From: Macrostomum lignano | Taxonomy: Eukaryota | DNA: 64,000 bases | Assembly: GCA_002269645.1 (NCBI GenBank) | Contig: NIVC01000089.1 | Location: 434,001-498,000 of the forward strand | Direction of reading: 5' to 3' | Shown here: positions 10,700 through 50,964 of the stretch, piece by piece | Position numbering within the stretch: position 1 is the first letter of the stretch | Layout: the number at the start of each line of letters is the position of its first letter | The notes under the pieces: generated by a model | Databases searched by the model: none | What the model saw: only the letters and a program-made list of their open reading frames with translations | What the model was told of the DNA's origin: nothing | Position numbers and translations under genes: made by a program

Positions 10700-12012
10700 T
10701 TTCGACGGAATTCCGGCCCGATTCGGAACTCAAGGCGGCCGGTCGGATCGGTGACTAATACCTGACGATTCGACCTGTCAATCACAATTAGAAGATTCTG
10801 CCTGCTACACGATCGAATTCGATACGGATGAATCACGGGCGGACTGTCCACTTGATGCCTGTAGCTGAAGAAGAACACCTTGAGAAACTTGCCCGCTGCG
10901 CTGTACACAAATATCCTCTTCTGCGGCAGCTCAACAGAGAAATACATGTTTGACAAATAAGTCAGTGATACGGGAAAGTTGTGCAGACTGAAAGACATAA
11001 TGATCTCAAATGGCAGCGCATCCTGCACCGCCGACAATGCATCTGCATTGCCGCAGTCAGCTCTGTCGGCATCAGGAGCTGCTGTAGGCAAGGTGTGACC
11101 GCCTCTATTAAAGCCACCTCTGCCTCCTCTGTTGGCTGAGGCGACATCGGACGAGCCGCGTTGAGACGGCCAAGAAAAGTTTCCACCACGAGACCGAGAC
11201 ATGCCACGACCAGCTCGAGAACGAGGGCCGCTTCTACCTCGAGATGAAGCCACTTGACCCCTAACTGCAACAGGTGAAAAGAAGTGCGCAGCGTCATCTG
11301 CATCGCCTTCACAGTCATCCTGAGAAGGTGTGTTCGAATTTTCATCGGATGTTTCGTCTTCGACAGTCTGATTGAACTTGTGCAGTTCAGCAGCTGATCC
11401 GTGCTTAGCAGCGCCCCGACCATACGGCCTGGCTCGTGCACCCACACTGACTCCACGAATTCCGTGCGCTCGATAAGGCCTTCTGTGCAGCCAGGTGCCT
11501 CCACGAGCACCGAAAGATCGTTGTTCATCACCGCCAGCTTCATCTAGAGCTGCTGCACCACTGCATTCTTCTTCTCTACTGCTGCGCAACATTGTGCCAA
11601 AATCAACTTTCTGCAGCATCTGATAGTCACAGCTGGCGAAATCTTCAGCCTGGCAGTCTTCGCCGCTGTCGGCTTCTCCGGCGTCCGCAGTCGAGGCGAA
11701 CGGATTGTCGGCCTCGCGCCGCATCATCCACTCGTCGCGCCAGTCGATCTTCAGACTGTCCAGCAGACGATGCGTTCGTCGACTAGCCAGCATTGCGTCA
11801 AAATGGCCGCTTCTGAGACGGATTTCCAGTCTCTGTTCAGCATCAGAATTTGCAGCAGCTTTATAAGCATCCTCTCTGCCATCCTGCTGCTCCTCGTGCT
11901 CTTCAATATCTTTAATGAGCTCGGATCTGCGAGCCTCCAGTTGCGCTATAACGTCGTCAAAGAAACTATTGACCTGACTTTTAAGCTCCACGATTCCGGC
12001 TGCTTGGCTCAT
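10700..12012 (-). CDS. Array gene G1, exon 1: coiled coil + RGG-rich linker + first half of NHL-like propeller; second exon not found
   Basis: ATG at 12012. TRIM-type coil FFDDVIAQLEARRSELIKDI and LLDSLKIDWRDEWMMRREADNPF motif. Propeller half ...LIVIDRSNRQVLVTDPTGRLEFRIGP. Phase-2 donor AA|GTGAGT at 10699, as in paralogs. Confidence 0.8.
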
Positions 12013-12133
12013 CGAATGTGATCGGCGAAGTCGAGGAAAACATAAAAAAATGTTTTTAATAATTTAATAACTGTTAATAAAAACGGATCTTGCTATCAAA
12101 GATTTAAGCTTCAGTTGAGAACTTTCCACCATC

Positions 12134-12412
12134 TTGCGCCGGCGGCGACTACAACTGGCGGGCCACGTGATCCCCTACTGCCTCCAACCTGTTCAGGACG
12201 TCCTGCTTCTCACCCTGCAGGGCCCGTTTAGGCCGGGTCAGGCCCAAACCCGTCGATACGTGGACTGCCTCCTACGCGACGCCGGGGCGCCCGACACTGC
12301 CAAACTGGGCGAACTTAGTCCGCTCTCTCAGGCTCTTCGGCGCGCCATCTGACGCACCCTGCTGTGAATTTGCTTGCGGGTCTGCGTAATTTGTTGTTGT
12401 TGTTGTTGTTGA
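12134..12412 (+). mobile_element. 3' fragment of RTE-type non-LTR retrotransposon
   Basis: Encodes RRRRLQLAGHV...VLLLTLQGPFRPGQAQTRRYVDCLLRD, the typical RRLxWAGHV...RGRP..W.D LINE C-terminus. Ends in a (TTG)n tail. Confidence 0.7.
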
Positions 12413-14092: not shown

Positions 14093-16239
14093 CTACATCA
14101 GGTAGCGTCTATCAACAACATAGACTTTTCCATTGTCGCAGCCGATAGCAGCTTGGCCACTTTCCAACGGGCAGAGGCAGATCGCTGGCCAAGGCGTCTT
14201 CACCGACTGGAAGCTGGCGCGCCACAAGTCGATGCCAAGGAAGCTGAAAACGCGAAGGGTCCGGTCGCTGGTCCAGCAGCACAGCAGCAGGCGGTCGCCA
14301 AAGAACTCCAAGCAAGGCGGCATCTCCGATTCGAACGTCCCGCCGTCTGGCGCGCCCCAGTCGCTCGCCTCAACTGTAGTTTTAGCCGGCTTCAGATGGA
14401 ACGCGCGCAGACTGTAGGTGCCGAGAGTCACGTGGTCGAGGACGCAGAGCCTGGCCGCAGTCGGATTCCAGGCCAGTCGCATCGGCGCCGACAATCGCAG
14501 TTTGTCACGAGCCAGCGTCGCTTTGCAAGTTTTAGGTGCGGTCAGGGAGACCAGGTAGATACCCTGGCTTGGCGAGCAAATTGCCAGAAACTTGCCGGTG
14601 CTCACGGCGTCCTCGGGTGCAGACAGGCGGTGACTGCAGAATGTTATTTAAGAAAGATGGATTCCACTAGCCGTTTATACTAGCAACGCACACACATACG
14701 TGTAAGTCACTATTGGCTAAGAAAAGTTATGTAAAATCTGGCCCATCCCGCCACATCAGTTTCTGTGGCTATGATTCATACAAGGCACACTTACAGTAAG
14801 CGTCTGGAAGAAATATGAGACTTACACGCAGCTAAAATACGGACCAACAGTGAGAATCGGTGACAAGTTTTGTCTGGCCAACAGGTGAACCTGACAGTTG
14901 GACTTGTCAATTAGGATAAGCGCGTCCCATTCTTTAAACGAGCGAATACGATAGGCATTCTTCACGTGAGGGCCAATGTTGCGAGCTGTGCCAAACTTTC
15001 CACTTGAATCGTACACGGAAACACTTTTTGGATGCGACTCAATTGAGTAGAATTCGTCAGATAAATAAGTTAGCGACGTTGGTTTCTCACGGAGACTGAT
15101 TGACAGTTGGCAAGGAAACGGCGAGGAATCGCTACTTGAGGAATTTTGTTGCTTACTAGATGAGGAACTTAGAGACTGGTCTGTTGATTTAAAATGATGT
15201 GACGCCTTTAGCTTATCCATGTGAGGCGGTACCGACTTCTTTTCAACAATACACGGAGATTCACTTAGGATTGAAACGGAATAGTCTTTGTCGGAATCTG
15301 ATACAGACGCACTCTGTCCAGAAGCTGACACAGGTGTACCTTTTCCAGTCGCAGAAGGCATAGATGCACCTTTACCTGTCGCTGACGGCATAGATGCACC
15401 TCTTCCAGTAGCTGACACAGACGAGTAGCGGCTATTTCGAGCTGATGCGGAACCAATTTTAGTAGAAGCAGACACATTACCACCTTCATCAGAGGTTGTT
15501 TCAGATGCGCCTTTGTTGGCATCCAATGTTATTTCTGTATTGAATACGGAACTCTGTAATGGTTTATAATAGTAGTTATAATCACATGCATGCAATTGAC
15601 TTTATATGATTGTATATTTTTCAAGTGAACTGATAGACACTATCAACTCACTTGTACACCAGCTTGCTTATTTTGAACTTCTGACAAAGCAGAGCGCAAG
15701 TTCTCCGTGCTTAGCAGTGAATACGCAGAGAGAATTTCGCTTTCTTCATCACTCTCAACCTTCGCAGCGTCCACAGATGAGGCGAACGGGTTGTCTGCCT
15801 GGCGCCTCATCGTCCACTCGTCGTGCCAACTGATCTTTAGACTTTCCAGCAGACGCTCCGTTCGCCGCGTGGCCAGTTTTATATCGAACTACCCGATCTG
15901 CAGCAGGTCAGCTTCGCACCGCAGGCAAGCGTCAAGCCTCTGCTCGACATCGCAGTGAGTCGCTGAGTGATCAGACTTATGATCACCGGAGCCCGTCAAC
16001 TTCTCTGCATCCTCGGCAATAATGAGACTATTAATTCGCTGTTCAGGTGTCAGAGAGTGATCTTGAATCTCTCTGAGCAGGCCGGCTCTGCAAATCTCCA
16101 ACTTGGCGATTGAATCGTTGAAAAACTCGTTCACCTGCCTGAGCAGCTCTTTGTTGTCAGATGCGCGGTTAATCAGCGACCGGAGCTGCGTAGACTTGAA
16201 CTGCATTGCCCCCGTGTCTATTATTGATGAGCGAGACAT
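14093..16239 (-). pseudogene. Array gene G2: coiled coil + NHL-like propeller with an in-frame TAG
   Basis: Exons 16239-15652, 15553-14826 and 14633-14093 join in frame (phase 0, phase 2). TAG at 15891-15889 lies inside IG*FDIKLATRRTERLLESLKISW..ADNPF, collinear with G1 SGHFDAMLASRRTHRLLDSLKIDW..ADNPF. Confidence 0.75.
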
Positions 16240-16870: not shown

Positions 16871-19209
16871 TTACGGTTCGAGGCGCAGCAGGCTGACGCG
16901 GCAGCCGCGCTTATCGCAGACTGCCAGGCGACTGCCGCCATCTCCGACTGGATCGTCGACCCAGCAAACGTCGGTCAGACGCTCCCAGTTACCGAACTCA
17001 CACGTGTAGTTAAGCCTGCGCAGCGGATTTCGGTCCAGTCGACGAAAAGATTCATCGCGAAACTGCATCAACTCGTAGCCATCGACGATGACGGCCAACG
17101 GCGAAAAGCCGCTGCCGCCAGACGGCAGGTAGGCGATCTCGGGCGTCCTGTCCGAGGCCAGGCACGCGTAGAATTCGCTGTTCAGCATGAGACCACCTGA
17201 CGGTTCGTGACAGTTGGCGAATTCAAAAGCGCGCGCAACGTAGCGACCGTCTTCATCGTCCACAACCACCAGATGGCCGGCCGACTCGCACCAGGCCATG
17301 CGGACCGGCTGCTCGAGGTCCAGATATTCGCAGGTCTGCGTCACCACGCGAACGGCGCTGTGAGCGGAGTCGACAACAAGGATAAAAATGCCAACCAATG
17401 GGCAGCAGATAAAGAGACAGCTGCCGTTGCTCACAGCCTGCTCAGGATTCTCAAGAAAGTACCTGAAAATGAGAACATTTGATTGATCGTGTTTACGAGT
17501 AGAAACTTGCTTATATTATAGTTTGTCCGCTAACTAGAGCGAACTCTAATAATACCGACTATGGCTAGAACACATGATAATAATCAACCACAGAAGGCTT
17601 GCACTACTACAGAAGCAGTGTCACTTCAGGTTCAGTTCATGACAAGCTAAACATTCACGCCCCATTTCGTTTAACCGCCCTGAGCACGCAGGCATGTGTT
17701 CACATAGGGAGCACAGCGATCAAGACTTTTTATCGTCAGGCATGTTTAAACTCTGTGCCTTAGGGGGTTGGCCTTTATGGACAAGAATCGCACAATCCCC
17801 CCAAGTCAATTTAGGCACGGGGCCCAAATTAAATTGGCCGCGCAAACCAAATTTAACCTGGTGACTTTGGTGCGAGTCGGGGCGCGCTACCGCTGAGCTG
17901 CTCCACTCATATAATTGATAATTAATAATTTATTACACCTGCCCCAATTAGGCAGATGTGCAACTGACAGCTCAGCCGCAGCTATTGCGCGGCGCATCTG
18001 AAGGCTGCGTACGGCTGTTCAGTTTAAAGACTGGGGGGTCGCGACACACACCCTCAATTACCCCAGCTAATGCTGGCACCCATTTTACCGTCGTGAGTCC
18101 GACGCTCTGACCACTAGGCTACAACTCCAAGTGACCTCAGATCACGTGATCAGAAAGCTACAACATGTAAATCAAAGCAGATCCAGAACAGCATGTTAGA
18201 CATCACTGGGCAGTCTCAAAACTAATCAAATAATGAACATTCTATTGGATCGGGAAACGTCTAAAAAAGTTCAGAATTCTAACGCTCACCTAGCACTAAC
18301 TTTAGGACCGATTTCCCACTCGCAGCGGTGCTTCGAATTGACACAAAGCACAATATCGTTGCGGTTGTCAACAATGATGAGCCAGTCGTTAGTTTTGCAC
18401 GAGCTAAGCCGATAGGCTTTCGTATGCTGCATTTCCACGCCATCAAAATCTGTGACTCGAAGCTGGCCGCGATACTTTCCGCTAACTGCATCGTATCTGT
18501 GAACAGAGTTCTTCTCCACAGTGTAGAATTTACCGTGAATACTGGCGATAGAATACGGCGAATTCATTGTGCGAAACTGCTGCGTATACAATTTCTTGGC
18601 ACCGTGACCGACACTGTTAGGTGAACCTAAAGCTGTTGAGTAGCTAGAAGCACTTGAATTAGGACTAAACCCAGTAGCAGCCATGTTGCTTTGGTTCGAG
18701 TTAACCAAGGTGGTACGGGCAACTCCAGTAGCAGCAGCCATGTAGCTTTGGTTCGAGTTAACCAAGGTGGTACGGGCAACTCCAGTAGCAGCAGCCATGT
18801 AGCTTTGGTTCGCGTTCCCAACGGTGCTATGACAAACTTCAGTGGCGGTCATGTTGCTTTGGTTAGCGCTATTTGCTCCACAAACTGTGCTGCCAGCAGC
18901 TGTATAAACAGTGTTGTAGTTAGAAGATCTTGAAGGCTCGACAGAGTTTTCCGATACCACAGTGTCAGGTGTCCAGTCAAGCCGCAGACAATCCAAAAGA
19001 TGGCTGGCGCGCCTACCAGCTTCGGATAAGTCCAGGCCGATTCGCGGTACACTGGACGATTCAGATGGAGCAGAAATTGTTTCGCTAAGCTGGCGGTACA
19101 GCTCGGACTGACGCCGCTCGAGCTCGGTGACGGTCTCTTCAAAGAAGCCGCCTAGGCGGGCGCGCAGCAAGCGTAGCTGCTGCTGCTGCTCAACGTTGGA
19201 TTGTTGCAT
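16871..19209 (-). CDS. Array gene G3: coiled coil + NHL-like propeller, 503 aa
   Basis: Exons 19209-18290 and 17462-16871. AG|GTGAGC donor and TTTTCAG| acceptor, phase 2. The junction reads GPKVSAR-YFLENPEQAVSNG, as in paralogs. Confidence 0.85.
17640..17907 (-). mobile_element. tRNA-derived SINE-like fragment in the G3 intron
   Basis: Minus strand starts GAGTGGAGCAGCTCAGCGGTAGCGCGCCCCGACTCGC (tRNA-like head with A box). Confidence 0.45.
17910..18128 (-). mobile_element. tRNA-derived SINE, internally deleted copy
   Basis: Reverse complement of 56066-56345 (TAGCCTAGTGGTCAGAGCGTC...GTAAAATGGGTGCCAGCATTAGCTGGGG), lacking the middle segment. Confidence 0.75.
18671..18870 (-). repeat. Coding 57-bp tandem repeat in the G3 linker (NSNQSYMAAATGVARTTLV)
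   Basis: CCAGTAGCAG at 18671, 18725 and 18782; about 3.5 copies, in frame. Confidence 0.9.
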
Positions 19210-19869: not shown

Positions 19870-21726
19870 TTAGCAGGTGTTCAGTAATCGAATCCATCGA
19901 GTTTTCTTATCGCAAACTGCAACGCGGAATTCGTCAACAACGCAAATGTCCGTGATATGCCCCCAGTTGGCGGGCTTGCTAAAACTGTACAACTCATGGC
20001 ACTGAGGGTCATACAAACACTCTCGATTGAAGGCTCCTACATATGTTTTATTGTGAGTGAAAACAACTCTATCGGAGTCAGGTAAGCAGACGAATTCTGG
20101 CACATAATCCGACTGAATACTCATACAATGATCGCTGGCCTTGGCAAGGCCGCCAGCAAAAGACGACCCAGTGACCTCCAATGCGTGAAAAGTGTAAGAG
20201 GCAGAGTGACCTTCGTCGTTTATAACTATTAATCGATTGGTTGCCAGACTCCAAGCTATGCAAATAGGCTGTGACAAGCCAATGTGCTCAATTGTTTGTG
20301 TCACGCTCCTGTTGTCGCTGAATCGCACAATAAAAATAGCCTGCTCAGGACAGCAGATAAACAAATGACTGCCGTTGCTGACAGCCTCGACTGGATCTTG
20401 AAGTCTGTACCTGTAAATGTGTAGAAAATTATAAAGATGTTTGTAAATTGCGCTGAAATTTATCAATGCACGAGAATCGTAGAATCATGAATACTCGCAC
20501 GCTTGCTATATGCCTACTTACTTGGCACTAATACGAGGCCCAGCCTGAAACCGGACAACACCGTCCGAGTCAACACACAGGACTCGATCATTATCGCACT
20601 CAATAATCAATAACCAATCGTTTTCAGTGCAACGTCGAACGTACAGAGGTCGATAATCGACAGGATTACATTCATCATCAGTTAAGGCCAGTTTGCCCAA
20701 ACAGCGCCCGTCCTGACAGCGGTATTGTCGAATGCAGCCGCCCTCAACTGTATAGAATTTGTCATGCACGTAGGTGACAGACTTCGGCGCACCAACAGTG
20801 CGACAGTCTTTTATCTCAATAAAGCTGGACGTATCGGAAGAATCAGACGAAGGAGAGTCGGATATGCTCGGTGGGCGGTCGTCTGCATCGAAGCCTGCGT
20901 TATGCTGCAAATATGATAAGCCATTAGCACCTGCTGGCTGCATGCTTAAAGGCTGTGTTGCGCTTAGAGGCGGAAAAAACATATCGATAGCAGAGACGCT
21001 ACCGGAATGCGTTGGAGTGTGATCTAATCTATAAGGATCAGGTGTTTCGGCACTGGGCGATTGACTGCCAGTTGCGTCGCAAGCTTTGAGACTGTTGGAA
21101 GGCGTCAGGACATGCGAGAAGTCGATTGAGCCGCTTGAAGCAAACTCTCCGTAGGCGGACTCTGTCGTAGGCGGCTCAGAAACCGTTGCCGACGACGCAC
21201 CTGCAGCGAATGGATTGTCGGCCCGACGTTGCCGCACCCAATCGGCATCTTCGCCGTCGCCATCATCATGACAGCTCGAGTTTAACCGAAGACAGGACAG
21301 TAAACGGCGAGTGCGACGTTCAGCCTCGGCGAGGTCGATGTCAGGTTGCTCTCGCAAGGCGATGGCATCATCCAGGCGTCGCAGAAGGTCGACCGAGGCG
21401 GTCTCCGAACAGACTGCTGAGGCCGCTTCGGCAGCTTCTGTCAGCAGCGTTTGTTCTTTCCCGGAATTTGCCGCCGCCGCTGCAGCTAACCGACGGTCGA
21501 GAGCTGCCTGCAGTTCTGTCCTGCGCCGCTCGAACCTTTGCAGCGTCTCATCGAAGTATGCGTCTAACTGAGTGCGCAGCTGTCGAGTCTCAGTCTCAGC
21601 TGCGCTAATCTGGTGGAGGCTTTCGTCTTCGACTGCAGATTCGGCTGCGCTCAGCAAACGCTTCAGTTGTGTCGCTTTGACTCGAATCAAGTCAACATTA
21701 GCGCTTGCCTTTTCCGTGTTAAGCAT
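19870..21726 (-). CDS. Array gene G4: coiled coil + NHL-like propeller, 581 aa
   Basis: Likely ATG at 21726. Exons 21726-20522 and 20410-19870, separated by a 111-bp phase-2 intron (AA|GTAAGT...TTTACAG|). Carries the DWVRQRRADNPF motif. Confidence 0.85.
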
Positions 21727-22890: not shown

Positions 22891-22968
22891 TCTACGAAAA
22901 ATTTCTCACAATGAACAACTCAAAAGTACTAAACGGTTATCTGCCACTCAGGTCACTTAAAAAGCATT

Positions 22969-25900
22969 TCATTTCATACTTAGTACGCGAATCCATCGAG
23001 TCTTCTTGTCGCACACAGCCACCAGACCCTCGCATACGACACAGATACCGGAGAGCAGCTGTGACTGGACAAATCTGCACGTAGAATCGCTATCGCCTGG
23101 GGGATTGTAGAATATCTCACTGCCGAATAGGGTGACTTTAGAGTCGTTAGAAGTGTAAACAACTTTATCAGACTCAGGAAAGCAAACAAGATCCGGCTCG
23201 TTGTAAGAATCCAATTTCAAATATGAAATATTGGCCTTTGAAAGACCACCAATTCCACCACCAGTGACGTCAAACACATCCACAGTGTATGAGCCATTGT
23301 CTTTGTTGTCCATTACAATCAACCGACTGGTCACCTCACTCCAGGCAAGGCGAATGGGCCTGGATAAGCGCAGATGCTCTTTGGTCTGCGTCACAGTCCT
23401 ACCGTCACTGATTCGTACAAAGAAAATGGCTTGTTCAGGACAGCAAATGAACAGATGAGTGCCGCGGCTCACCGCTTGTACCGGGTCTTCTAGTGAGTAT
23501 CTAAAAAGTAAGAATTACTTGGATATGCAGATAAAGAATGTTTAATAAGAGTGCACGTGGCAACTGTGAACAACAGCGAAATGATTTAACGAAGCTACAA
23601 CTTACTTCGCACTGATACGAGGTCCGAATATTCGCTCCGCAGTGCCGAATATATTGACGCAAACGACACAACAATTTTCCTTGTCGACAATCAACAGCCA
23701 GTCATTGGTAGCGCAGCTGTGAAGAGAAAATGGCCGAATATGCTCCATAGGTTCTCCATCCTCGTCAACCAGTGCTAGTTTTCCCAGGCAGCGACTATCT
23801 TGCCAACTGTATTTACGAATACAGCCGCCTTCTACTGTGTAGAATCTGTTGTGCACGAATGCGATGGACTTCGGTGCACCAATAGTATGACAGTCGCTCA
23901 TATCGAATAACCCAGACGATAGACTTGTTGATTCGTCATCAGAAGCATCAGCACTATAAAGCTTGTCTCCCGTGTTATGAAGGCTGGACGATTCGCAGCT
24001 ACCTGAATTCGATTTATAATTAAGTCTATCAAAATCATAATTAAATGAAGATGGCTCTGCTGAGCATGGTCTCCGACTGGTGTGCGTGGAACTTGTGACG
24101 GGACTGTCACCAGCAATAGCATCATTCGCCAATGGAGTCACAGACGCTGAAATTGTATGTTTGCTACGGTCGGAATCTTCAGAGCGAAGATTGCCAGTGG
24201 AATTAGTAGACTTGGCGTATAGCACGTAGATCTTTCTAGCCTTGTGGTCGCACACGGCCAAACGATCTTCGTCAATGACGCATATGTCTGAGAGGCGCTT
24301 CCACTCGTCGAACTTGCACAGCATTGTGGCCATTTTTATGGGTATATTAAACGAATCGTAGTCAAACTGCATCAATTCAGTGCCGTAAGAAGTGTAAACA
24401 ACTCTGCCAGACTTGGCTAAGCAAACAAGATCAGGGTCGTAGTTGGAATATAATTTCAAATAAGAGTCGTTGACCATCGAAAGACCACCAATTCCACCAC
24501 CAGTGACGTCAAACACATCCACAGTGTATGAGCCATTGTCTTTGTTGTCCATTACAATCAACCGACTGGTCACCTCACTCCAGGCAAGGCGAATGGGTCT
24601 GGATAAGCGCAGATGCTCTTTGGTCTGCGTCACAGTCCTACCGTCACTGATTCGTACAAAGAAAATGGCTTGTTCAGGACAGCAAATGAACAGATGAGTG
24701 CCGCTGCTCACCGCTTGTACCGGGTCTTCAAGTGAGTACCTAGAGTGAATAATTACAAAAGATATTTTTATATTCTGAGGCTTCAAATGAGACAAGAGAC
24801 CTCTCAGGTCAGAAAACAATGATCATATTTTATTCTATGTGAACTTCTATAATTAGGTCAGATTAGCATACTTATTTTAGTGCTGAGTACTTTTGATAAA
24901 AAAATTAAGCTAAATACAGAACAAGGATACGCTAGAATCCTAGGTTATATGAATTGAAGCAAACAGTTTCAGCTGACGACGTACTTAGCACTAACTCGTG
25001 GTCCAAATTTGAATCTCACAATTTCGTATGAATCGACACAAGCAACACGACAATTAACCATGTCGACGATCAACAACCAATCGTTGGTGTCGCAGCTTCG
25101 AACAGAATAGGGAGTAACATCTACAGACTCATCGTCTTCGTTAGTCAAGTTTAGCTTGCCTAGACAGCGTAAATCCTGCAAGCGGTATTTCCGAATGCAG
25201 TCCCCCTCCACTGTATAAAATCGTCCGTGTACGAAGGTCAAAGACACCGGAGCACTGACAGTATCGAAATTAGCCAATTCCTCACAGAAGTGTAATGATT
25301 CCGAGGACGGAAAATCAGAATTAGAAGAACTGCTTGGTTTGAACTCTACAGCTGCCTCTTGGTAATCAAAGTTGTCAGGCATATCCTGATAACTTGTAGA
25401 TTCAATACGCTCTAAGTTGATTTTGGATTCAACCATCTCCTTTCTATCGGACGCATCAATAGTAGGATGCGCGCTTCTATAAAAACCAGCCTCTTTGGAG
25501 ATATTTTCCGAAATCTTCTTTAATGATGAAAACTCGCAAGGACCAAAGCCAGTAATAATCTTTGTCGAATCGTAAGAATTCTCAGCTGAGGCTGCCTGCG
25601 GGCCGCTATCGTTCATTTCATTGGTTAAATGCTTACAAACATTAGACGCGCTCAACACTCCACTGTCAGAAATGTTTTCAGGGCCACTCCATGGCGATAG
25701 GACACGTGAGAAGGCAATTGAGCCGTTTGACGCGATCTGTCCGTAGGCAGACTCTTGAGCAGGCTCAGAAACCGTGGCTGGCGACGCACCCGCAGCAAAC
25801 GGATCGTCGGCCCGACGCTGCCGCATCCAGTCAGCATCTTCCTCGTCACAGCCATCTTGATGGCTCCAAGCAAACGTCAGACAGGCCAGTAAACGACGAG

Positions 25901-39711: not shown

Positions 39712-42700
39712 TCAACTTAGCTCAGCAATTTGCTCAACCACAACCACACTACCATTTACAGCGTCGCCAAATACAGCACCTTGACCGTCGCGAAAAGTAC
39801 ACAGAGCAGTTGGACGAGTCACCGAACCAATGGCAGAGTCGACGTCCTTAGCAACGGTAACAACGCCCAACCCGGAGTTGGCGAGATTAATTAGCAACAA
39901 TCTGCAGACTTCTCTTATTCCATTGTCACCAAGGCAGACAGCGGCCGGCAGGATTAGTCGATCCCGGCTGTACACCATCAGCCCAGTCAGCACCAAAGCC
40001 GACGACGTAGCAAATGGAAGCGAATTGAAGTTCAGGCGTCGGATAGGCGAAAAGGACAGCGGCGCCAGCGGAGTCCGCGCCAGGCCGCAAAGCACTACCG
40101 CCGACGGTTGCGATCCGGCCAAGGCCGCTGACGCAACAGCCAGGAGACTGTGGCTTTGGCACCAAGCCAAGCTGGCAGGCCGGCTGACGCTCAGAGATTC
40201 GCCGGACTGACGTTGCCACACGGCCGGGGCGAGGCCGGGCTGGCTGGCGGCCAGCAGCAGGCAGTCGGTGTCCGGACAGGCCACGCAGACAAGTCCGGCG
40301 TCGGATGCGGCAACATCCGTAGCACCGGTGGCAACTTCGGAGCCTTAAACAGTCATTGAAGCGTCGAAGGAGTCATTGAAAAGTGATCGGCACTTGGCAA
40401 ACCAGGGCTATAGTGGTGCATTGGCACTTTTAGTGTTTTTTACACTAAGCAGATGTACAGTGGTGCAAATTGTTGGAAATTCCACCTCACTCATTTAAAA
40501 CAAAGTGCTCTACCTTCAAGCGTCCACAGAAGACAACCCGACGGCAGCTGAAAGGCGCGCACAGAGGTGCTGGATTCGCCAGTTCGCGCCAAAACGAACA
40601 GCGCGCCGCGTCCACCGATGACAGCCGATCGAACCGCGCCGATTCCAGTCAGCGCAGTTAAGCCTGGCGGCAGGGGCTGCTGCTGGCCGCGAATGTCGTA
40701 GCAGCCAAGTCGACCGATTTTTTTTAAATCAGAGTCTTCCTGTTCAACCACGTACAGCCGGTCATTGTGGCAGGCAATAGAGAGCGGCGTGCCGGCGTTG
40801 GCGGTGCGAAAACGCCAGGAGTTCGCGCTACTGGAGGCGGAGGTCGAGGCTGAGACGGCAGAATCGTCGGCGGTTGAGGCAAGCGAATTGGAGCGCTGAG
40901 GATTGGCGAAAATACGAAGACTAATCATTGCGCGAACGAATATATATAGGAATTTAGCACGATTCAACGCTTTTTAAATTAATTATAGAGTAATATAGCT
41001 TTTTGCAGCCCATTTGGGCTTACGCGCATTGAATTTAATCCAAGATACGTTTGCCTATGTAGTGGAGCTTTTTTCTATGGTAGCAAGGCTGGCATAGCGG
41101 CATCTAATTTGGTCCAACAAGCACAATTCGGTCCATAGCTTCATTTGCAACTGCTGCGAAGGAGCAAGATCGGCCCCAGAATTGTGGACCATATGCTAGG
41201 CTGTTGAACGAACGCCATTGGCTTGTGATCGAAGCACTCGACAGAGGTGAACACCCAAATGACATTGCAAGGTTGCTGAATGTAAAAGAAAATATGGTTT
41301 ACAGCATCCATCAGCGCGTTGAAACTCTGCCGGCAGAGATCGCCTGCGAAAGGGTGGCAATCGCCAAGGCAAGTTGCTCGAGAGCCGGCCTCAGGTCCAA
41401 CTGCTACTCGAAGCAGTTGAGAAACCCTTTGACGTTGCAGAAAATGCAGCAGAAGTTGAAGAAACAGTTCCAGTTAGTTATCAGATTTCTACCATCAGCA
41501 GAGCTCTGGAAAAGTGACTGAAAATTGTTGGTAGAAACGCTGACATTCCAGCGGTACGCAACAACCTGCAGACGGTTGCGATAAGGCAAGAGTTTGTCCA
41601 ATGGCTCCCGAGCATTCGGACCAAACTGATGCTTGTTGGACCAAACTAAATGCCGCTATGCCAGCCTTGCTACCATAGACAAAATCTCCGTTACATTGGC
41701 AAACGTATCTTGGATTAAATTCAATGCTCGTAAGCCTAAATGGGCTGCAAAAAGCTATACATATATATATGTATACTTTTTTGCGATTGAATTCATCCAA
41801 ACTGCAAAACCTTTCGTCCACAAATGCTTTCTTAATGGGAGCTAAATTTAGATTATACCATAGACAACTGTGTTCACGCAAAACGGTTCATCCAGTTTGT
41901 AAAACATTTCGTCTAAACCCTACGTCCAAACAGCTAACAGCTAAACGGAGCGACTTTATTTGATATCACGAGATATTGAACAAAGCAAAAACAGTGTCTC
42001 TTGTTAGAATGTTAGTTCAAAATGTCTTCGTAGTCCAAACAGCGGCCGTAGTAACCCACAGTGTGATTGGTCCATTGCTGGCACTTCTCCTGTGTAATCA
42101 CGTGCAGTGCAGCTTCGACCTCTCTCTTCAAAATGTGCATCCGCCAGGCCTCGGTTCATCTTCGACTGTTTTGCCGGGTTCAGAATGGAAGATATGCGTT
42201 GCTGTAGCTGTAGTGGTAGCAAAAGCGAACTGTCAATTGGGTGTTAACTATGGTAGGAACAGTACACTCGGTCTCTAGTCTAGGGGACGAAATGTTTTAC
42301 AAACTGGATGAACCGTTTTGCGCGAACACAGCTGTCTATGGTATGATCTAAATTTAGCTCCCATTAAGAAAGCATTTGTGGACGAAAGGTTTTGCAGTTT
42401 GGACGAATTCAATCGCAAAAAAGTATATTACTCTATATATATATATATTTGCGACCCGTTTGATTTTTACTTGATTAAAATCCAAGACACTAAACTGGCG
42501 CATAGCAGTCTGACGTAGCAGCGTGGGAGATTTTACACAGACAATGCATAGACAACAGAAATCAATGGTAAGCCGAGGTCAATACTCGTAAACAAGTCAC
42601 TCAAGCATTTATTGCCCTAGCACTGGTATTAATATTATTATAAATATAAATGGGGAATATTATACATGTATTCCCCAGTTGCACTGGTGCAGTAGTCTAT

Positions 42701-45700
42701 GTTCTAATGGTTTATTTCGTTTATCTGCACCGGTGCAGATAAATGATTTATTTGCACCGGCACAGAGTGCAAATAAACGAGAACTTTATATTTTAAAGGG
42801 ATACATTTGGGCATCAATAACTGAGCCACAGGTGGAATGCATGACTAAAGTAAAGAATGTCACACAGAGGACCAAACGCCGAAATAAGTCTGGACCGGTG
42901 GTTTGGAGTTTGATGTTGGTGAAATAAAGCAAATTGATAGAGACAACGAATAGAATAAAAACGACGAGATTTCACTGTAACAGTCGCCAAAAGTAGTCTT
43001 AATAGTCGCCAAGAGTCACTTTGAAGCGCATTTTTTGTCTGCGACTCTGAAACGACTCTGATGCGACGCAAGTGACCCTGCCGCGACGGTATAACGACTC
43101 TGGGGCCGTAGACTCGTATTCGAAGCGCTATAGTCGTGTTTGAAGCGCATTTGCGTCGCTTGATGAATTAGAGTGACATCTCTAGCGAAATTTAAGCGAC
43201 CAACACACACGATTCTTGGAGGATTCTATCAAGACTTACAATTTCACAACGTGACGCGTTTGAGTCGTTAAAGTAAGTCACAAAAGTCACTCCAGAGTCG
43301 TTTTCTAAAACCTAGTCTAATCCATTTTTCCAAAAAACGAATTAAGTTTCAGACTGAAACTCGATCTTGGATAGCTGTGATGCAAAAACTTTAGAGCTTC
43401 TCAATCAATTTTCATCGGGAATGGTCTTGCTTAAGATAAAACGAGCAGCTTGTTTTTGGAAGTTTCTTTAGGGAGTAAATGTTCAGAGCACCGGCCCATA
43501 TAATTCGCACAGAAGTAAATCCCAGGGAAGTGCCGACACCCATGGACAAAATTAACACTAGAATATTCATTAAGTCACCCATATCGAATTTTAGGCTGCC
43601 AATGATTTTGCTTACCGTATAGGTCAGTGACCTCTCTGAGGAATATAAACGTATAACATCTATGGTGACGCATCCACTTACGTTAGCTAAAACAGCACGA
43701 TGAGGAGTTTCAATTGCAACCAGTTGCTTTGCCTCATCATTGGCTGGCTTCGCCTCTATTCTGGTGCCAATATTGGCTTCAACTGTGTCGCCAGTGCCGC
43801 CAGCAGCTGAGAAGGACTCAGTCAACGGTATGAACAGGCTGGAAAGGCGAAGTGCAGCACCCGAGATAACGGTGCTGCCTGACGACTTGATTGAACTTGC
43901 AGCTGGCAAGAGAAGCGGTTCAATGCCGTCAGCGGAACGGAAGCCGCAATTTGGGCAGGCAAGGTCGCGAGTTCGAGCATCCTGTAGCGCGACAAGACAA
44001 GGTGCGCAGAACACGTGGCCGCAAGGTATCCGTCTCGGATCAATAAACGACGCGTTGCAGACGTTGCAGGTTTGACTGATGTCCCTCTTCTGCTGCGCCT
44101 TGTCTGGGAGAGCATTTTCTTGACTGGACAGGCTCCTGTCTTTTAGATTGGCTGTGTAACCAGTGTTCTTTGTCTCTTCATTAACATTGGGTTGAGCGCT
44201 AGCCATTTCTGAAGCTTTCACTGACAAAGAAGATACTTTGGGAGCAGCAAAGAAGGGAGCAGCAGCCATCGACGCAGTGATACTAGAGGCACTAAACGTC
44301 TCAATGCTTGGCCCAGCAGAAGATTTTTGCTTACGCGCAGTGGACACAGCAACTGTTGCCACGTCAGCTGTAGCCGACTGATTCGCTGAGTTGGCCGATT
44401 CTCTAAAGGAAAAGGAAAAGAAAGGAAACTGAAATCTAGGCATGGAACAAGTCTATAGAATTAATTTGAGAATGAAATAACCGAAATAATACTTTAGTCG
44501 AGTCAGAAATTCAATTTATATATCTGATTCTATATGCTTACGAGGATACCTAAATTTTTTTTGGTTTCGACCCTTTTTGACCAAGGTCAGCGCACCAAAC
44601 TTCCACACCTTTTCAGAGCACCCCCTCCCCCTACTCTGAGTACAGCGCTCCATACGATGAAACCAGGCCTGAAAGCACTGGGACCACTTCTTCGGAATAG
44701 GCACCTCTTTTATAGGGAGGCTCTGTAGGCTTCCTCTTCGTCCTGGAATTAAAGTTCCACGAAGTTTTTCCTTGGCTAGTGCAAACAACAAGTAGTCCCA
44801 CGGTGCCAAGTCAGGAGAATTAGGAATGGATTTCTGAGCCATGAAACCCACATTGCGAGCTGCTGTGTGGGCACACTGGTATTGTCGTGGTGCCACAACA
44901 TACCGCATGTTCCGCTGCGAGGTCTCTTCTCGTGCCACTTCTGCAGAACCTCTGGTACGCATACTGTTGTGTACCATTCTTGTTGTGTCCCTTATACTGG
45001 CCCTTAATGCCAGTAATCCCAGTTTGTTTTTTCTAAGCTTGTTTGCTAAATGATGTCGACACCAAGGACTACTCAAGTGGGACGGAAAACTACGTTTTCT
45101 TAGAAAATGTTAAGAAGGCTGGTTTTCGCCAAAAATACACTACTGAGATAGGAAGTTTTCATTCTTTCAGCACAAAATTGTTATTGCTTTCGATAGGAGG
45201 CAGACCCAATGCTCAACCCCCGATATGCTGTGCCTTTCTTCTACGAAATTCTTCTCTATTTGATTCTAGGTAGAATAAAGAATTAGCACAGAATCCAAAT
45301 TTTCTGAACAAAAAACCCGTTGAACTTTTCACCCGGAATTTTTTCCTATTCCAGTAATGCAATCAGATCCGGGTGGAAATTCCGGATCTGTAACGAAAGT
45401 TTACAGAATCCGGGCGAATTTTCCGGATCATTTGGTCCGGATCACTGAGGAATTCCGACTGAAGTCCCGAAATTCTCCCGGATCAGCTTCGCCCGGAAAT
45501 TGGCTGAAATTCGGGTCAAGGGGAGCTGATCCGGGTGAATTTTCCGGATCACTGGGGAATTCCGACTGAAGTCCCGAAATCTCACCCGGAACATTTTCAT
45601 CCGGAATCTTCATCCGGTATCCTACTAAAATTCGGGTCTACACTCAGAATTCAGTAGTGTACCGGGTGAAAAATTTCGGAAAATCCAACCCGAACAGCTT

Positions 45701-48700
45701 TTCTTTTTCCCAAAATTTTACCGGATCATATTTCCGGATCTTTCTCCGGAAAAAGTGGCTGTTCCGGGCCAAAAAAGCTGATCCGGGCCTTCATCCGGAA
45801 ATAAATTAAAAATCGGGCCCGGATCACAAAATTCCGGGTGAAAAGTTCAACGGGAACTTTATGAAAATCAATATACCTATAGGAAAGGCACAACATATCA
45901 AAAGATGAAAATTGGGTCTGTCTCCTATCGGAAGCAATAACAATTTTTATGCTGAAAAAATGAAAACTTCCTATCTACGTAGTGTATTTTTGGCGAAAAC
46001 CAGCCTTCTTAACATTTTCTAAGAAACGTAGTTTACTGCTTCTTCTACTTGAGTAGTCCTTGGCCGACACACAAAGAGCACTACTCACGCTGGCCTGTCA
46101 ATAAACAGTACGGAGCCGAGCTTGTCCCAGACTGCCACAGTCTGGCAGTTGTCATCGTCGCTCGCGCTTGTCACATCGGCTGGCAGGCACTGCGCCAGCT
46201 GCACCTGGCGCACCGAGTAATCATCCAGTGAGGTGGCGCCCGGCGGCAGCCAGCTGACAACCAGCCGGCCGGGCCAGTAGCGCGCCACAACCAGCTCGCC
46301 ATCTGCGCGCACCAGCAGCGCCGGCAGAGTGGCCGATTGAAGAGATACACAAGGCCGCTGGGCTGGCCGAAATTCCGCTGTTGAAGTGGCCGAGTTTGCA
46401 TTGATTTTATAAGCGCGGATCGAATACTCGGAGCTGCTGTCGGCTGATTGGTCTGTGACCAGCAGCAGCCTGTACTGCCGGCACCAGGACAGGCGCTTGG
46501 GCTGGACCGGTTCGTTGGACTTGAATGTGCACCTGTTGATGTTTAATCAGCATTAGGAATGTAAACAGGGAATGTCAACTTGAGCACTGAAATTGGGGCC
46601 AGAAGCGAAGCAATCTATAACTTGTCCGACTAGCCGACTAGAGAGGCCGTGAGGTATGGGAAGAAGCTTTGGACTTCCATAGGATAGGATAGGACATTTA
46701 TTGGATTCTCAAATTCTGACTGCCAGCCAACAGTTCGAAGACCAGAAATTGACTACAAAGACCCTAACTATTAACCTTTAACCCCTACTTACCCTAATCA
46801 TAAATCATAACCCAAATTGCTAGCAGCCAAATCGGTAATCAAATTCATTAATTAAAATAATTGGTTTGATATTGTACCTAACATGTACTTTGGTAGCCCA
46901 AGGGAGGGACCTAGTTTCTAGTTGACTCAATGCAATAATTCAGTAGTACCTTGACAGAAATTTTAGTGCCCCTTGTAATTTCACCGAAAATATGGCTTAT
47001 CTATCAGATAGAATGAATAGAAATATTTCGTTAACACTGCTATAAATAAGAATGTGACGAATAATTTTGTACAAGCCGTACGTCATCTGGCACGGCTCGG
47101 CTCATTGGTTTAATGACCCTGTTTTATCGTTCTTAGCTGACTGTGTAACAAAGTGTGTAACAGAGATGATGAAATAGATTCATAAAATCAAAGAGTCGAG
47201 CAGTGCCATGCATTTTTATGACTTCTAGGTACAGGGAATGTACGTAGAATAAAAATCTAACATAGAATTCTAATTTTCTGAACAAAAATCTTTATTAATA
47301 TCAATAGAGCTATAAGAAAGGCAAAACATATCAAACTGCCTCCTATCGAAAGCAATAACAATTTTATATGAAAAAAGTGAAAAGTTCCTATCTCCGTAGT
47401 GTATTTTTTCGAAAAAACCAGCCTCCTTAACTTTTTCTGAGAAACGTAGTTTCCGGCCCTTCTATTCGAGTAGTCCTTGGTGTAAGTTAGCATAATAATG
47501 ATTGTTTGTTCTTATGTACATCGTTCAAAAACTGCAAGTTTTACAATCATGGTGATTATGCCGCTAAGAAGTGCATCTCGAATCCACCAATAGACTTATT
47601 TAGGTCTTGGATTAAGATATTGTTGTATTGTAATCAAAGCAAAAATGATGACATGTATTCATTTTGTTAACACACCTGTTCAAACCGCTTCCTTTATCAA
47701 CAGGGCCAGTGTAAAATTGGTGTTAACCCACCTGTTCAAACCGCTTCCTTTATCAACAGGGCCAGTGTAAAATTGGTGTTAACACACCTGTTCAAACCGC
47801 TTCCTTTATCAACAGGGCCAGTGTAAAATTGGTGTTAACACACCTGTTCAAACCGCTTCCTTTATCAACAGGGCCAGTGAAAAAAATGGTGTTAACACAC
47901 CTGTTCAAACCGCTTCCTTTATCAACAGGGCCAGTGTAAAATTGGTGTTAACCCACCTGTTCAAACCGCTTCCTTTATCAACAGGGCCAGTGTAAAATTG
48001 GTGTTAACACACCTGTTCAAACCGCTTCCTTTATCAACAGGGGCAGTGTAAAATTGGTGTTAACACACCTGTTCAAACCGCTTCCTTTATCAACAGGGCC
48101 AGTGTAAAATTGGTGTTAACCCACCTGTTCAAACCGCTTCCTTTATCAACAGGGCCAGTGTAAAATTGGTGTTAACCCACCTGTTCAAACCGCTTCCTTT
48201 ATCAACAGGGGCAGTGTAAAATTGGTGTTAACACACCTGTTCAAACCGCTTCCTTTATCAACAGGGCCAGTGTAAAATTGGTGTTAACCCACCTGTTCAA
48301 ACCGCTTCCTTTATCAACAGGGGCAGTGTAAAATTGGTGTTAACCCACCTGTTCAAACCGCTTCCTTTATCAACAGGGGCAGTGTAAAATTGGTGTTAAC
48401 CCACCTGTTCAAACCGCTTCCTTTATCAACAGGGGCAGTGTAAAATTGGTGTTAACACACCTGTTCAAACCGCTTCCTTTATCAACAGGGCCAGTGTAAA
48501 ATTGGTGTTAACACACCTGTTCAAACCGCTTCCTTTATCAACAGGGCCAGTGTAAAATTGGTGTTAACACACCTGTTCAAACCGCTTCCTTTATCAACAG
48601 GGCCTGTGTAAAATTGGTGTTAACACACCTGTTCAAACCGCTTCCTTTATCAACAGGGGCAGTGTAAAATTGGTGTTAACCCACCTGTTCAAACCGCTTC

Positions 48701-50964
48701 CTTTATCAACAGGGCCAGTGTAAAATTGGTGTTAACACACCTGTTCAAACCGCTTCCTTTATCAACAGGGCCAGTGTAAAATTGGTGTTAACACACCTGT
48801 TCAAACCGCTTCCTTTATCAACAGGGCAGTGTAAAATTGGTGTTAACCCACCTGTTCAAACCGCTTCCTTTATCAACAGGGCCAGTGTAAAATTGGTGTT
48901 AACACACCTGTTCAAACCGCTTCCTTTATCAACAGGGCCAGTGTAAAATTGGTGTTAACCCACCTGTTCAAACCGCTTCCTTTATCAACAGGGCCAGTGT
49001 AAAATTGGTGTTAACACACCTGTTCAAACCGCTTCCTTTATCAACAGGGGCAGTGTAAAATTGGTGTTAACACACCTGTTCAAACCGCTTCCTTTATCAA
49101 CAGGGGCAGTGTAAAATTGGTGTTAACCCACCTGTTCAAACCGCTTCCTTTATCAACAGGGCCAGTGTAAAATTGGTGTTAACCCACCTGTTCAAACCGC
49201 TTCCTTTATCAACAGGGCCAGTGTAAAATTGGTGTTAACACACCTGTTCAAACCGCTTCCTTTATCAACAGGGCCAGTGAAAAAAATGGTGTTAACACAC
49301 CTGTTCAAACCGCTTCCTTTATCAACAGGGCCAGTGTAAAATTGGTGTTAACCCACCTGTTCAAACCGCTTCCTTTATCAACAGGGCCAGTGTAAAATTG
49401 GTGTTAACACACCTGTTCAAACCGCTTCCTTTATCAACAGGGGCAGTGTAAAATTGGTGTTAACACACCTGTTCAAACCGCTTCCTTTATCAACAGGGCC
49501 AGTGTAAAATTGGTGTTAACCCACCTGTTCAAACCGCTTCCTTTATCAACAGGGCCAGTGTAAAATTGGTGTTAACCCACCTGTTCAAACCGCTTCCTTT
49601 ATCAACAGGGGCAGTGTAAAATTGGTGTTAACACACCTGTTCAAACCGCTTCCTTTATCAACAGGGCCAGTGTAAAATTGGTGTTAACACACCTGTTCAA
49701 ACCGCTTCCTTTATCAACAGGGGCAGTGTAAAATTGGTGTTAACCCACCTGTTCAAACCGCTTCCTTTATCAACAGGGCCAGTGTAAAATTGGTGTTAAC
49801 CCACCTGTTCAAACCGCTTCCTTTATCAACAGGGGCAGTGTAAAATTGGTGTTAACACACCTGTTCAAACCGCTTCCTTTATCAACAGGGGCAGTGTAAA
49901 ATTGGTGTTAACACACCTGTTCAAACCGCTTCCTTTATCAACAGGGCCAGTGTAAAATTGGTGTTAACCCACCTGTTCAAACCGCTTCCTTTATCAACAG
50001 GGGCAGTGTAAAATTGGTTGCGCTCCGAGCAGACAATCAGGTGTTGCCCAGTGCTAACAGCGTCCACCAAGTCAGCCAAAATGCCAGCCACAGCGGTAAC
50101 CTGGCCGCTGGTCTTGGCCCAGGCCACCCGCTTGTGCCCGGCATCAAGCAGGATCAGGCGATTCGACACGCGGCAGGCGGCAACCCGAACCGGCCAGGTC
50201 ACTTTTTTGTCGGACAATTTCACTTCTCCAATGCTACGAATCGCCGGACAATTTTCGTCGCTGCCAAGCGAATAGGCCACAAGGCGAACTTGTTCGATAC
50301 CGCGAGAACCGGACACTTCTAAGTTGTAGTAGGTGTCCCCGAGGCGGGTTGCAGAAATCAGAGGCGAAATAAGACGGACTGACTTGGACTGAGTTGTTGC
50401 TCCAAAAAGAGCTGCATTTGATCTGCCCGACTCAGCAACAGAGCCTGCAGTTGACCTACCAGACGCCGACTCGCTTAAACATCCAGAATTCGCAACAGAA
50501 GAAGCTAAAGTCGAACTGTTTGAATTCGAGGCAGAATCAGAAGAGCTCAGTACAGCATCTGCTGCAGTTTTCGCCGACTGTCTCGGTGACTGCACCGGAT
50601 TTTTGTCAACTTTGCTACCAAAATTTACCAACGAATAGCCTCCTCCAGCAACCGGAACAAAGGCGGCGGTCCTGTAACTGTCTGTCGCAGGCATCCACCG
50701 CAGTTCCAAACAGCGCATGAGCCTGGCAACTGCTGACTTTAACTCGGCATTAGATTCTCTGCTCAATTTGTTCTCTACCGAGCAGTGCCGAGTAAGCTGT
50801 GCGAGTTGCCCTGAGAGACGGGCGAAAAAAGCATCAATGTTTGTCTGGCAACAGCCGGCCGACTCTGTGGCGTCAAGGAGTCGACGAACAACGTCAGCCT
50901 TCTGACGGAGTCGCTGCCGGGCGAGCCGCTCCAGGATCAGCTGACTGTCAGCTGACTCTTGCAT
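39712..50964 (-). CDS. Array gene G10: coiled coil + propeller + C3HC4 RING + propeller, 1056-aa model (probable E3 ligase)
   Basis: Exons 50964-49973, 46532-46089, 44402-43682, 40895-40514 and 40343-39712. All joins are GT-AG and frame-compatible (phases 2,2,0,1), total 3171 nt. The exon 1/2 join reads GLNR-CTFKSNEPVQPKRLSWC, matching the paralog PxRxAWC motif. Confidence 0.6.
40996..41757 (+). mobile_element. Tc1/mariner-derived non-autonomous element
   Basis: About 130-bp TIRs (TAGCTTTTTGCAGCCCATTT... / ...AAATGGGCTGCAAAAAGCTA) with TA on both flanks. Internal remnant ORF 41204-41521 has a helix-turn-helix-like IARLLNVKENMVYSI. Confidence 0.75.
41774..42425. mobile_element. Second TA-flanked MITE with ~140-bp TIRs
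   Basis: TACTTTTTTGCGATTGAATTC...CATTTCGTC (41774-41912) is mirrored at 42285-42425. Confidence 0.75.
43946..44068 (-). other. C3HC4 RING finger coding segment
   Basis: CNVC-x11-CGHVFCAPC-x13-CPNC, TRIM-like spacing. Confidence 0.92.
44516..45050 (-). mobile_element. Degenerate mariner transposase C-terminal remnant
   Basis: PNSPDLAPWDYLLFALAKEKLRG resembles the mariner YSPDLAPxD motif, and FQAWFHRMERCTQSRG resembles the C-terminal motif. Confidence 0.75.
45062..46063. mobile_element. MITE with ~150-bp TIRs (CCAAGGACTACTCAAG...CTTGAGTAGTCCTTGG)
   Basis: Inverted arms at 45062-45207 and 45913-46063. Further family fragments at 47257-47480 and 10340-10432. Confidence 0.8.
45316..45854. mobile_element. 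Nested CCGG-rich MITE with CCC...GGG ends
   Basis: 26-bp TIR CCCGTTGAACTTTTCACCCGGAATTT. The empty-site homolog at 47275-47300 suggests a 2-bp (AA) target duplication. Confidence 0.75.
47665..50017. repeat. 56-bp tandem array (about 42 copies) derived from the G10 exon 1/intron 1 junction
   Basis: Unit (A/C)CACCTGTTCAAACCGCTTCCTTTATCAACAGGGCCAGTGTAAAATTGGTGTTAAC. Period 56 (47671, 47727...). The minus strand encodes NQFYTAPVDKGSGLNR followed by a GT donor. Confidence 0.97.

Follow-up and report, generated by a model that had tools for sequence, protein, structure and literature searches.

TRIM-NHL proteins, which are conserved across animals, combine a RING, a B-box and a coiled coil with an NHL propeller, and NHLRC1/malin has a RING and an NHL-type propeller with neither B-box nor coiled coil. 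Here we describe a gene family of Macrostomum lignano in which a helical coil precedes such a propeller. The family lies in a 64-kb window (64,000 nucleotides; contig NIVC01000089.1 of assembly GCA_002269645.1, Mlig_3_7, positions 434,001 to 498,000), the whole stretch of DNA that was analysed. NIVC01000089.1 position equals window position plus 434,000, and coordinates below are those of the window. An earlier reading of these letters, hereafter the sequence-only reading, had proposed a lineage-specific birth-and-death family of genes with a coil and a fast-evolving propeller. Our analysis gives good support to a family that is known only from M. lignano, has no B-box, is transcribed, and evolves by duplication, conversion and loss. 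That this M. lignano-only family descends from a TRIM-NHL or RING-NHL protein, and that its members form coil-paired, mostly RING-less platforms for multivalent binding, we consider fairly probable.

Ten coils and twelve propellers on one strand

The family array runs on the minus strand throughout and fills ~40 kb between 10.7 and 51 kb of the window. We built gene models from translations of open reading frames (ORFs) and from a conserved phase-2 intron, whose donor follows directly on the motif GPxxSA[KR], and we counted domains by scanning the six-frame translation of the window with family profiles. Ten N-terminal coils were found, in G1, G3 and G5–G12, and none in G2 or G4. Propellers number twelve: 11 are clear profile matches and the twelfth, the diverged copy in G2, is a weak one (expectation value (E) 0.007). 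Three propeller pieces outside the training alignment also match, the first half of G1 at 3e-13, its second half (G1b) at 6.5e-18 and the first half of G11 at 1.4e-14, so that the repetition is real and not a matter of chance. The units are these:

G1, 46088–51036, minus strand: coil (50964–50683), linker, propeller halves (50385–49963 and 46519–46091)
G2, 39712–44402, minus strand: RING exon (acceptor 44402; C3HC4 RING from 44068; GTAAGT donor after 43682) and propeller exons (40895–40512 and ~40343–39712) with the most diverged propeller of the array; no coil
G3, 38604–36634, minus strand: 656 amino acids (aa), coil (38538–38122), linker, propeller; intact, intronless
G3+G4, 35259–38604, minus strand: G4 is a linker and second propeller, ending at 35259
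G5, 32393–33860, minus strand: coil (33860–33450), linker, propeller; intronless
G6, 30463–30903, minus strand: 146-aa ORF with coil only (30888–30475; coil-profile E 1.3e-47)
G7, 28130–29781, minus strand: coil (29781–29368), linker, propeller; family intron at 28800–28698
G8, 22969–26348, minus strand: three exons (26348–24985, 24739–23606, 23500–22969), 1009 aa, coil at 26336–25854; intact
G9, 19870–21726, minus strand: two exons (ATG 21726–20522, 20410–19870); coil (21726–21262), linker, propeller; intact
G10, 16871–19209, minus strand: two exons (19209–18290, 17462–16871), 503 aa, coil at 19185–18964; intact
G12, 14093–16206, minus strand: coil exon 16206–~15653 (coil 16206–15814), linker and propeller half 1 (~15553–14826), half 2 (14633–14093)
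G11 exon 1, 10700–12012, minus strand: coil (11988–11728), Gly/Arg/Ser-rich linker, propeller blades 1–2 (10995–10708), GTGAGT donor at its end

Each of the three propellers without a coil of its own (G2, G4 and G8b) lies directly downstream of a unit with coil and propeller, to which an in-frame join is possible. The array is better counted as about nine or ten genes with twelve propellers, three of these genes having two. The two-propeller genes and the coil-less RING member are points beyond the sequence-only reading.

In its outline of the array, that reading was right. It had seen about ten paralogs on the same strand; the profile scan finds ten coils and twelve propellers, all on the minus strand, and the limits given for the array, 10700 and 50964, are accurate. 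The motifs it had picked out recur in the consensuses of our alignments, FFxxxxxxLERRRA...EL and LLxxLxxxW for the coil, and PxSxT..FYxVE, WLIIxDxxNxxVxCV, DAVSxGxxLFICCP, PxRLAW and AVCxxxG for the propeller. The linkers between the two domains are, as described, of low complexity and mutually unrelated, with internal repeats of 57 bp and 30 bp in G10 and G12. High divergence had been claimed as well, and the propellers are 18–31% identical between subgroups and 36–66% within the subgroup of G8, G9 and G10. Duplicated, truncated and frameshifted copies are represented by G8 with its two propellers, G6 with a coil only, G5 and G7 with frameshifts, G12 with a stop and G1 with a split propeller.

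The genes are not silent, which the sequence-only reading had named as a counter-sign. For Mlig_3_7, gene annotation in GenBank draws on RNA sequencing and transcript assemblies alone (StringTie/TACO and a de novo transcriptome), with models that overlapped repeats taken out (PMC5730564). GenBank locus L002, on the same contig and assembly, is 100% identical to the window over 6871–29209. There, our models of G8, G9 and G10 equal the transcript-derived ones: the G10 product (short coil, linker with the 57-bp repeat, propeller) is identical to PAA91367.1; G9 has 100% identity to PAA91368 (586 aa) over all three domains; and the G8 exons total 3030 nucleotides (nt), which by exon arithmetic exactly fits the 1009-aa GenBank model at L002 2862–6241. 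Because the GenBank models are built from transcripts and these three match exactly, the genes are transcribed and spliced. G11 is 99.8% identical to PAA91366 (578 aa) over aa 1–447, the GenBank model extending past the end of the locus. To judge by these models, at least G8–G11 are transcribed and spliced as modelled.

The propeller, the coil and the RING

Pfam recognizes neither domain: in ten ORFs of the window it reports nothing for coil or propeller, and no NHL match at E≤1. The fold comes from structure prediction. An AlphaFold2 model of the G3 propeller, made with an alignment of its paralogs, is all-beta, with 23 strands in six blades (predicted local distance difference test score (pLDDT) 89.2, predicted template modelling score (pTM) 0.88). 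The best full-length fits that Foldseek finds for it in the PDB are the NHL domains of TRIM2, TRIM3, TRIM71, Thin, Brat and Mei-P26 (template modelling score 0.64–0.68 from both sides); seven-bladed WD40 proteins fit less well. A six-bladed NHL-like propeller is exactly what the sequence-only reading had expected of AlphaFold and Foldseek. The domain is about 270–290 residues in size. A profile of nine propeller copies, searched against PDB sequences, leads to the NHL domains of TRIM2, Thin (TRIM32) and TRIM71 (E 2e-3 to 1e-2) and also to those of TRIM3 and NHLRC2. What matches is a stretch of blade 2 with the classical repeat xIIVDxxNxRVxVFxxxG.

When 1.84 billion representative proteins were searched exhaustively with HMMER, 13 fell below 1e-30, all of them from M. 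lignano, and the scores drop sharply after these. Nine weaker matches (E 2e-18 to 4e-6) were scanned: Pfam NHL repeats are present in eight, and the remaining one, P0064, belongs to the family itself. Five more of the weaker matches all have PF01436 NHL repeats. Since the proteins that follow the drop are NHL-repeat proteins, the domain is a highly diverged NHL propeller; as modelled, it is a six-bladed NHL-type β-propeller. Of the relatives elsewhere, P0004 alone passes the Pfam NHL cut-off, and just so (21 versus 20 bits).

The coil ranges from 83 to 162 aa among the paralogs and folds, by prediction, into four helices, of which one has 43 residues and a pLDDT of about 90. When the PDB was searched with a profile of nine coils from the window, TRIM25 coiled-coil entries took ranks 1–4 (E 0.014–0.04); with four relatives from other loci added they took ranks 1, 2 and 4 (E 0.028). 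The alignment spans the LL.A.E...(ld)..F....L..R..E part of helix 1. This link between the family coil and that of TRIM25 is suggestive but marginal. Of the TRIM-like (BBC-like) coil that the sequence-only reading had expected, the helices are predicted; the TRIM link is hinted at by TRIM25, and Foldseek offers nothing for it.

The window has a single RING, of C3HC4 type, in G2 at 44068. It passes the cut-offs of Pfam zf-RING_UBOX, zf-C3HC4 and zf-C3HC4_4, and its best PDB matches are TRIM39, RNF135, TRIM69 and TRIM2, then CBL. G2 itself has no coil, and none of the ten coil-bearing units of the window has a RING by Pfam or pattern search. The ligand pattern of B-box1 and B-box2, even relaxed, is absent from all six frames of the 64 kb, and Pfam zf-B_box gives no match there. 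The complete transcript-derived coding sequence of G10 begins at the coil. These results agree with the earlier claim that the family has no B-box and that most members have no RING. With two of the three TRIM motifs tested and absent, the proteins are not TRIM proteins by definition. A coil-like stretch seen by eye in G2 at ~41.4–41.2 kb was rejected: it has no coil-profile match, model P0055 skips it, and the interval is mostly without counterpart in the homeolog.

Homeologous copies and splicing across stop codons

Word-indexed homology searches with the products of the window found M. lignano proteins only, one of which is 98% identical to the 656-aa product of G3. Neither a comparable family nor the one-to-one orthologs that the sequence-only reading had named as a counter-sign were found outside M. 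lignano in the libraries searched, from which other Macrostomum species may be missing. M. lignano itself has this array on three contigs, of 215 kb, 1.05 Mb and 1.57 Mb, which agrees with the redundancy known for its polyploid assembly (PMC5730564). One homeolog, L001 (NIVC01001995.1), is 88–98% identical to the window over G2–G5 and differs in intergenic satellite and repeat content. Damage is reversed there, G3 being frameshifted and G5 intact, so that different members are broken in different homeologs. Two further M. lignano loci hold relatives, each in several near-identical (homeologous) copies. At one (P0007, P0009, P0126, P0136), chains of three or more propellers are predicted, with an internal coil in P0009; the other (P0064, Mlig006918) has a single coil and propeller gene with a Gln-rich N-terminus.

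The two propellers of G8 share a tract of 382 nt (24756–24376 versus 23518–23137) that is 91% identical, with a core at 99–100%. Because the tract is this similar and its flanks are unalignable at the DNA level, we attribute it to gene conversion between the two. This tract, the pseudogenised and truncated copies, the different breakage between homeologs and strong matches confined to M. lignano bear out lineage-specific birth-and-death evolution. Transposon-borne units, a possibility that the sequence-only reading had named, were rejected: the units share no DNA-level repeat structure save the conversion tract, and short repeat elements fall between or inside genes, not flanking units.

G8 carries its two propellers (coil, linker, propeller a, linker, propeller b) in one continuous reading frame. 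G3 and G4 reach the same architecture by another route. The stop codon of G3 is overlapped by a strong donor, with AGCAG ending the exon and GTAAGC opening the intron (36634–36640; last exon base 36638). Splicing from this donor to an acceptor at 36516 brings G3 and G4 into one frame. Both sites are also present in L001, and the transcript-derived homeolog model P0001 (BOX15_Mlig019517g1) uses exactly this junction. An exact-match look-up of the 656-aa product of G3 alone found no record. At G1b, too, the stop at ~46088 (~46086–46090) is overlapped by a donor, GTGAGT, and a good acceptor at 44402 opens the RING exon. UniProt model P0055 joins G1b to this exon, and a homeolog model of 1083 aa that ends at the G2 propeller carries RING matches.

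At these stop-overlapping donors, splicing would extend the protein into the next propeller and intron retention would end it. The overlap could thus serve as a switch between single- and double-propeller products, and G1 and G2 are possibly one double-propeller gene. M. lignano also has multi-gene precursors trimmed by spliced-leader trans-splicing (PMC5730564), so that G1/G2 and G3/G4 could instead be separated.

On its right the array is bounded by the PRPF4 gene (U4/U6 small nuclear ribonucleoprotein Prp4; ~52.2–56 kb, minus strand), with PRP4 and WD40 domains. Minisatellites of 28 bp, 20 bp and 25 bp in the PRPF4 introns (52477–53381, 53933–54353 and 54956–55575) produce long spurious ORFs. 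The left bound consists of 23-bp satellite blocks (1–1049, 3898–5670 and 7498–9126; units GGTGGCTCTTTAATGTTTGACAT and AGAAGCGTCATGTAAAAAATCAT) and a short interstitial (TTAGGG)n tract of ~20 copies (6503–6625), which fall within a G11 intron of >10 kb modelled in GenBank. Exon 2 of G11 was sought within the window and is absent, lying beyond the left edge past this satellite-filled intron; the next paralog (P0013/PAA91365), likewise absent from the window, is also beyond that edge. A related satellite stands directly after G5 in the homeologous contig. The RING exon shares a 1.8-kb segment (43478–45314), absent from the corresponding place in L001, with an ORF (44516–45076) that by eye resembles the C-terminal part of a mariner/Tc1 transposase and has no Pfam match. 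An element of ~150 bp occurs in four copies (45900–46090, 45062–45210 in opposite orientation, 47336–47480 and 10340–10454). Rfam and tRNA scans of the window gave no matches.

Descent, selection and known systems

The most economical reading of the family, though not a proven one, is descent from a TRIM-NHL or RING-NHL protein, because the coil comes before an NHL propeller, the coil matches that of TRIM25 and the RING of G2 is of TRIM type. The ancestor would have been a protein with RING, B-box, coiled coil and NHL propeller, or a RING-NHL protein. The B-box would later have been lost, the RING lost in all but one member, and the gene duplicated in tandem; the polyploidy of M. lignano would then have triplicated the whole array. 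In a member protein, a helical coil of ~80–160 aa is tied to one or two six-bladed propellers by a linker that is disordered and of low complexity. The proteins are probably cytoplasmic; no signal peptide was seen at the family N-termini.

By analogy with TRIM coiled coils, the coil may pair two chains. Paired chains would present two propellers, or four in G8, in G3+G4 and possibly in G1+G2, and such a platform might bind RNA or protein ligands multivalently. Most members have no RING and therefore would not ubiquitinate by themselves; they would be adaptors, repressors or competitors, not E3 ligases. The coil-only product of G6, if expressed, could pair with full-length paralogs. No propeller-profile match follows it between 32399 and 29112. 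The G6 coil is 52–53% identical to those of G5 and G7.

Several results weigh against this reading. Pfam NHL (PF01436) stays below threshold on all window proteins scanned. The TRIM25 matches are marginal, coiled-coil matches are prone to compositional artefacts, and Foldseek gave zero matches for the coil model. Bacterial and archaeal NHL proteins score as high with the propeller profile as animal TRIM-NHL proteins, and TRIM ancestry is therefore not settled by sequence. The isoelectric point of the whole propeller domain runs from 5.3–5.95 (G3, G8a, G8b, G9, G10) to 8.8–9.0 (G4, G5, G7), which makes a uniform basic RNA-binding face unlikely. Finally, the ratio of nonsynonymous to synonymous substitution rates (dN/dS) between window and homeolog is 0.56–0.77 for G3, G4 and G2, on few substitutions, close to relaxed or neutral evolution.

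Some of these points would also fit an independent origin, in which a generic coiled coil of unrelated descent was joined to an NHL propeller, the G2 RING was acquired separately and the likeness to TRIM proteins is convergent. The slight TRIM25 similarity and the missing structural match for the coil would be expected, as would a RING member without a coil among coil members without a RING. The 1.8-kb RING-exon segment, missing from the matching place in L001, adjoins repeat elements, and the propeller profile matches prokaryotic NHL proteins as well as animal ones. We nonetheless think such an origin unlikely: TRIM-NHL proteins, too, have their coiled coil directly before the NHL propeller, TRIM25 entries top both versions of the coil profile, the G2 RING scores best against TRIM-type RINGs, and RING matches are also carried by the transcript-derived homeolog model that ends at the G2 propeller.

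The sequence-only reading had called the propeller fast-evolving and had suggested dN/dS on its top face as a check. Our data support neither a specially fast-evolving propeller nor a hypervariable top face. Between homeologs, propeller divergence is no greater than that of the coil, and dN/dS lies between 0.13 and 0.77 overall, with no value above 1. Window and homeolog give 0.63 for the G3 linker and propeller, 0.77 for the G3 coil, 0.56 for G4, 0.64 for G2 exon 1 and 0.31–0.33 for G5, which indicates, from few substitutions, a probably relaxed but not absent constraint. The old split between G8a and G8b gives 0.13 with the synonymous rate saturated, so that the fold has long been preserved. 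On the propeller model the inner strands a and b are conserved (0.39–0.42 mean pairwise identity), and strand d and all loops are variable. A hypervariable top face was not found: loops at top and bottom are equally variable (0.20–0.22 versus 0.15–0.18 mean pairwise identity). Equally variable faces around conserved inner strands are the pattern predicted by fold constraint alone.

It is against these data that a role in innate immunity or genome defence has to be judged, with propeller surfaces diversified by positive selection against viruses, transposons or foreign RNA. Expanded TRIM families act in vertebrate immunity. Lineage-specific tandem expansion with birth-and-death dynamics would suit such sensors, as would propellers far more diverged than coils in the deep paralogs G3, G5 and G7 (19–31% versus 37–53% identity), heterogeneous propeller charge and the higher dN/dS values of several members. 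However, no dN/dS exceeds 1, the propeller is not faster than the coil between homeologs, and top and bottom loops do not differ; a search by gene ID of the full-text literature and the supplements of M. lignano papers found no expression data by tissue, condition or infection. The sensor idea gains no specific support here and is in our view quite improbable. A broader proposal, which we regard as a long shot, is that coil-dimerised, RING-less NHL 'receptors' with diversified propellers and multi-gene precursors make up a Macrostomum-specific repertoire that recognises RNA or protein of foreign or selfish origin, in the manner of the expanded vertebrate TRIM families. Double-propeller forms would arise by splicing across stops, with either the lone RING member or other E3 ligases as effector.

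Five of the roughly ten units are broken or incomplete in this contig (G1, G5, G7, G12 and G6), by one nonsense mutation, two frameshifts, one minisatellite insertion and reduction to one coil-only fragment; G3, G8, G9 and G10 are intact. The nonsense mutation is a premature TAG in G12 (15891–15889), where homeolog P0008 (622 aa) has Gln. GenBank calls no gene at this place, and G12 is likely a pseudogene allele in NIVC01000089.1. G5 has a single frameshift at a T7 run (33128–33134), and its homeolog in L001 is an uninterrupted frame of 482 codons (called gene, 480 aa). In G7 the reading frame shifts by 1 nt near 29010, within blade 1; UniProt model P0002 omits the frameshifted part. The frameshifts of G5 and G7 may be long-read assembly errors; the nonsense substitution of G12 is less likely to be one. 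An insertion of 3.4 kb interrupts the G1 propeller exactly at profile position 138/139, and part of this insertion is a minisatellite (47665–50018; 56 bp × 42 copies, 97% identity). The minisatellite unit corresponds to a stretch of the sequence coding for the G1 propeller and reads QFYTGPVDKGSGLNRCVN; G1 appears to have been disrupted by expansion of a segment of its own exon.

We give very little credence to an array of largely decaying, redundant DNA in a neopolyploid genome with transcripts as by-products without selected function, which these broken units, the frameshift of G3 in the homeolog and the dN/dS of G2, G3 and G4 might suggest: G3, G8, G9 and G10 have long intact frames and conserved splice sites, G8–G10 equal transcript-derived models, anciently diverged paralogs keep fold-defining residues at dN/dS of 0.13 (G8a/b) and 0.31–0.33 (G5), each broken member has an intact counterpart in another homeolog where this could be checked, and the frameshifts may be artefacts of assembly.

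If functional, the family would show clearly how the TRIM-NHL module can be reduced to coil and propeller and afterwards multiply within a single animal lineage, with some of the proteins having two propellers per chain. This would bear on how NHL propellers gain new ligands, and on whether a coiled coil alone can organise them. On present evidence the family is a lineage-specific gene expansion of an ordinary kind, in a polyploid genome rich in repeats, with the sensor or adaptor role as a proposal. M. lignano has transgenesis and RNA interference, and the family is therefore experimentally accessible.

How does the family compare with known systems? Prokaryotic and other multi-repeat NHL proteins (PF01436) are retrieved by the propeller profile at E 1e-18 to 1e-4 through a common repeat motif; unlike the M. 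lignano proteins they are secreted or multi-domain, with many near-consensus repeats and no N-terminal coil. The antiparallel dimer of the TRIM25 coiled coil (PDB 4LTB/5NT1) is the top sequence match of the coil profile, with a marginal E and no structural match, and the M. lignano coil is very variable in length. G2, if it is a separate mRNA, resembles NHLRC1/malin in having a C3HC4 RING, a linker and an NHL-type propeller. However, sequence orthology with malin is not detectable, no propeller of the array is more diverged than that of G2, and, as in model P0055 and the homeolog gene of 1083 aa, splicing may put the G2 RING after the G1 propeller and so in mid-protein.

The closest likeness is to the TRIM-NHL proteins (TRIM2, TRIM3, TRIM32/Thin, TRIM71/LIN-41, Brat, Mei-P26 and NHL-2). 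Like these, the M. lignano proteins have a C-terminal six-bladed NHL propeller, for which TRIM-NHL domains are the best structural and PDB sequence matches, behind a predicted helical coiled-coil region and a linker, and are taken to be cytoplasmic. Unlike them, they have no B-box in any member, no RING in 10 of 11, a Pfam NHL score below threshold and no detected orthologs outside M. lignano. Three of the M. lignano genes, moreover, carry tandem double propellers, an arrangement that to our knowledge has not been described for TRIM-NHL proteins.

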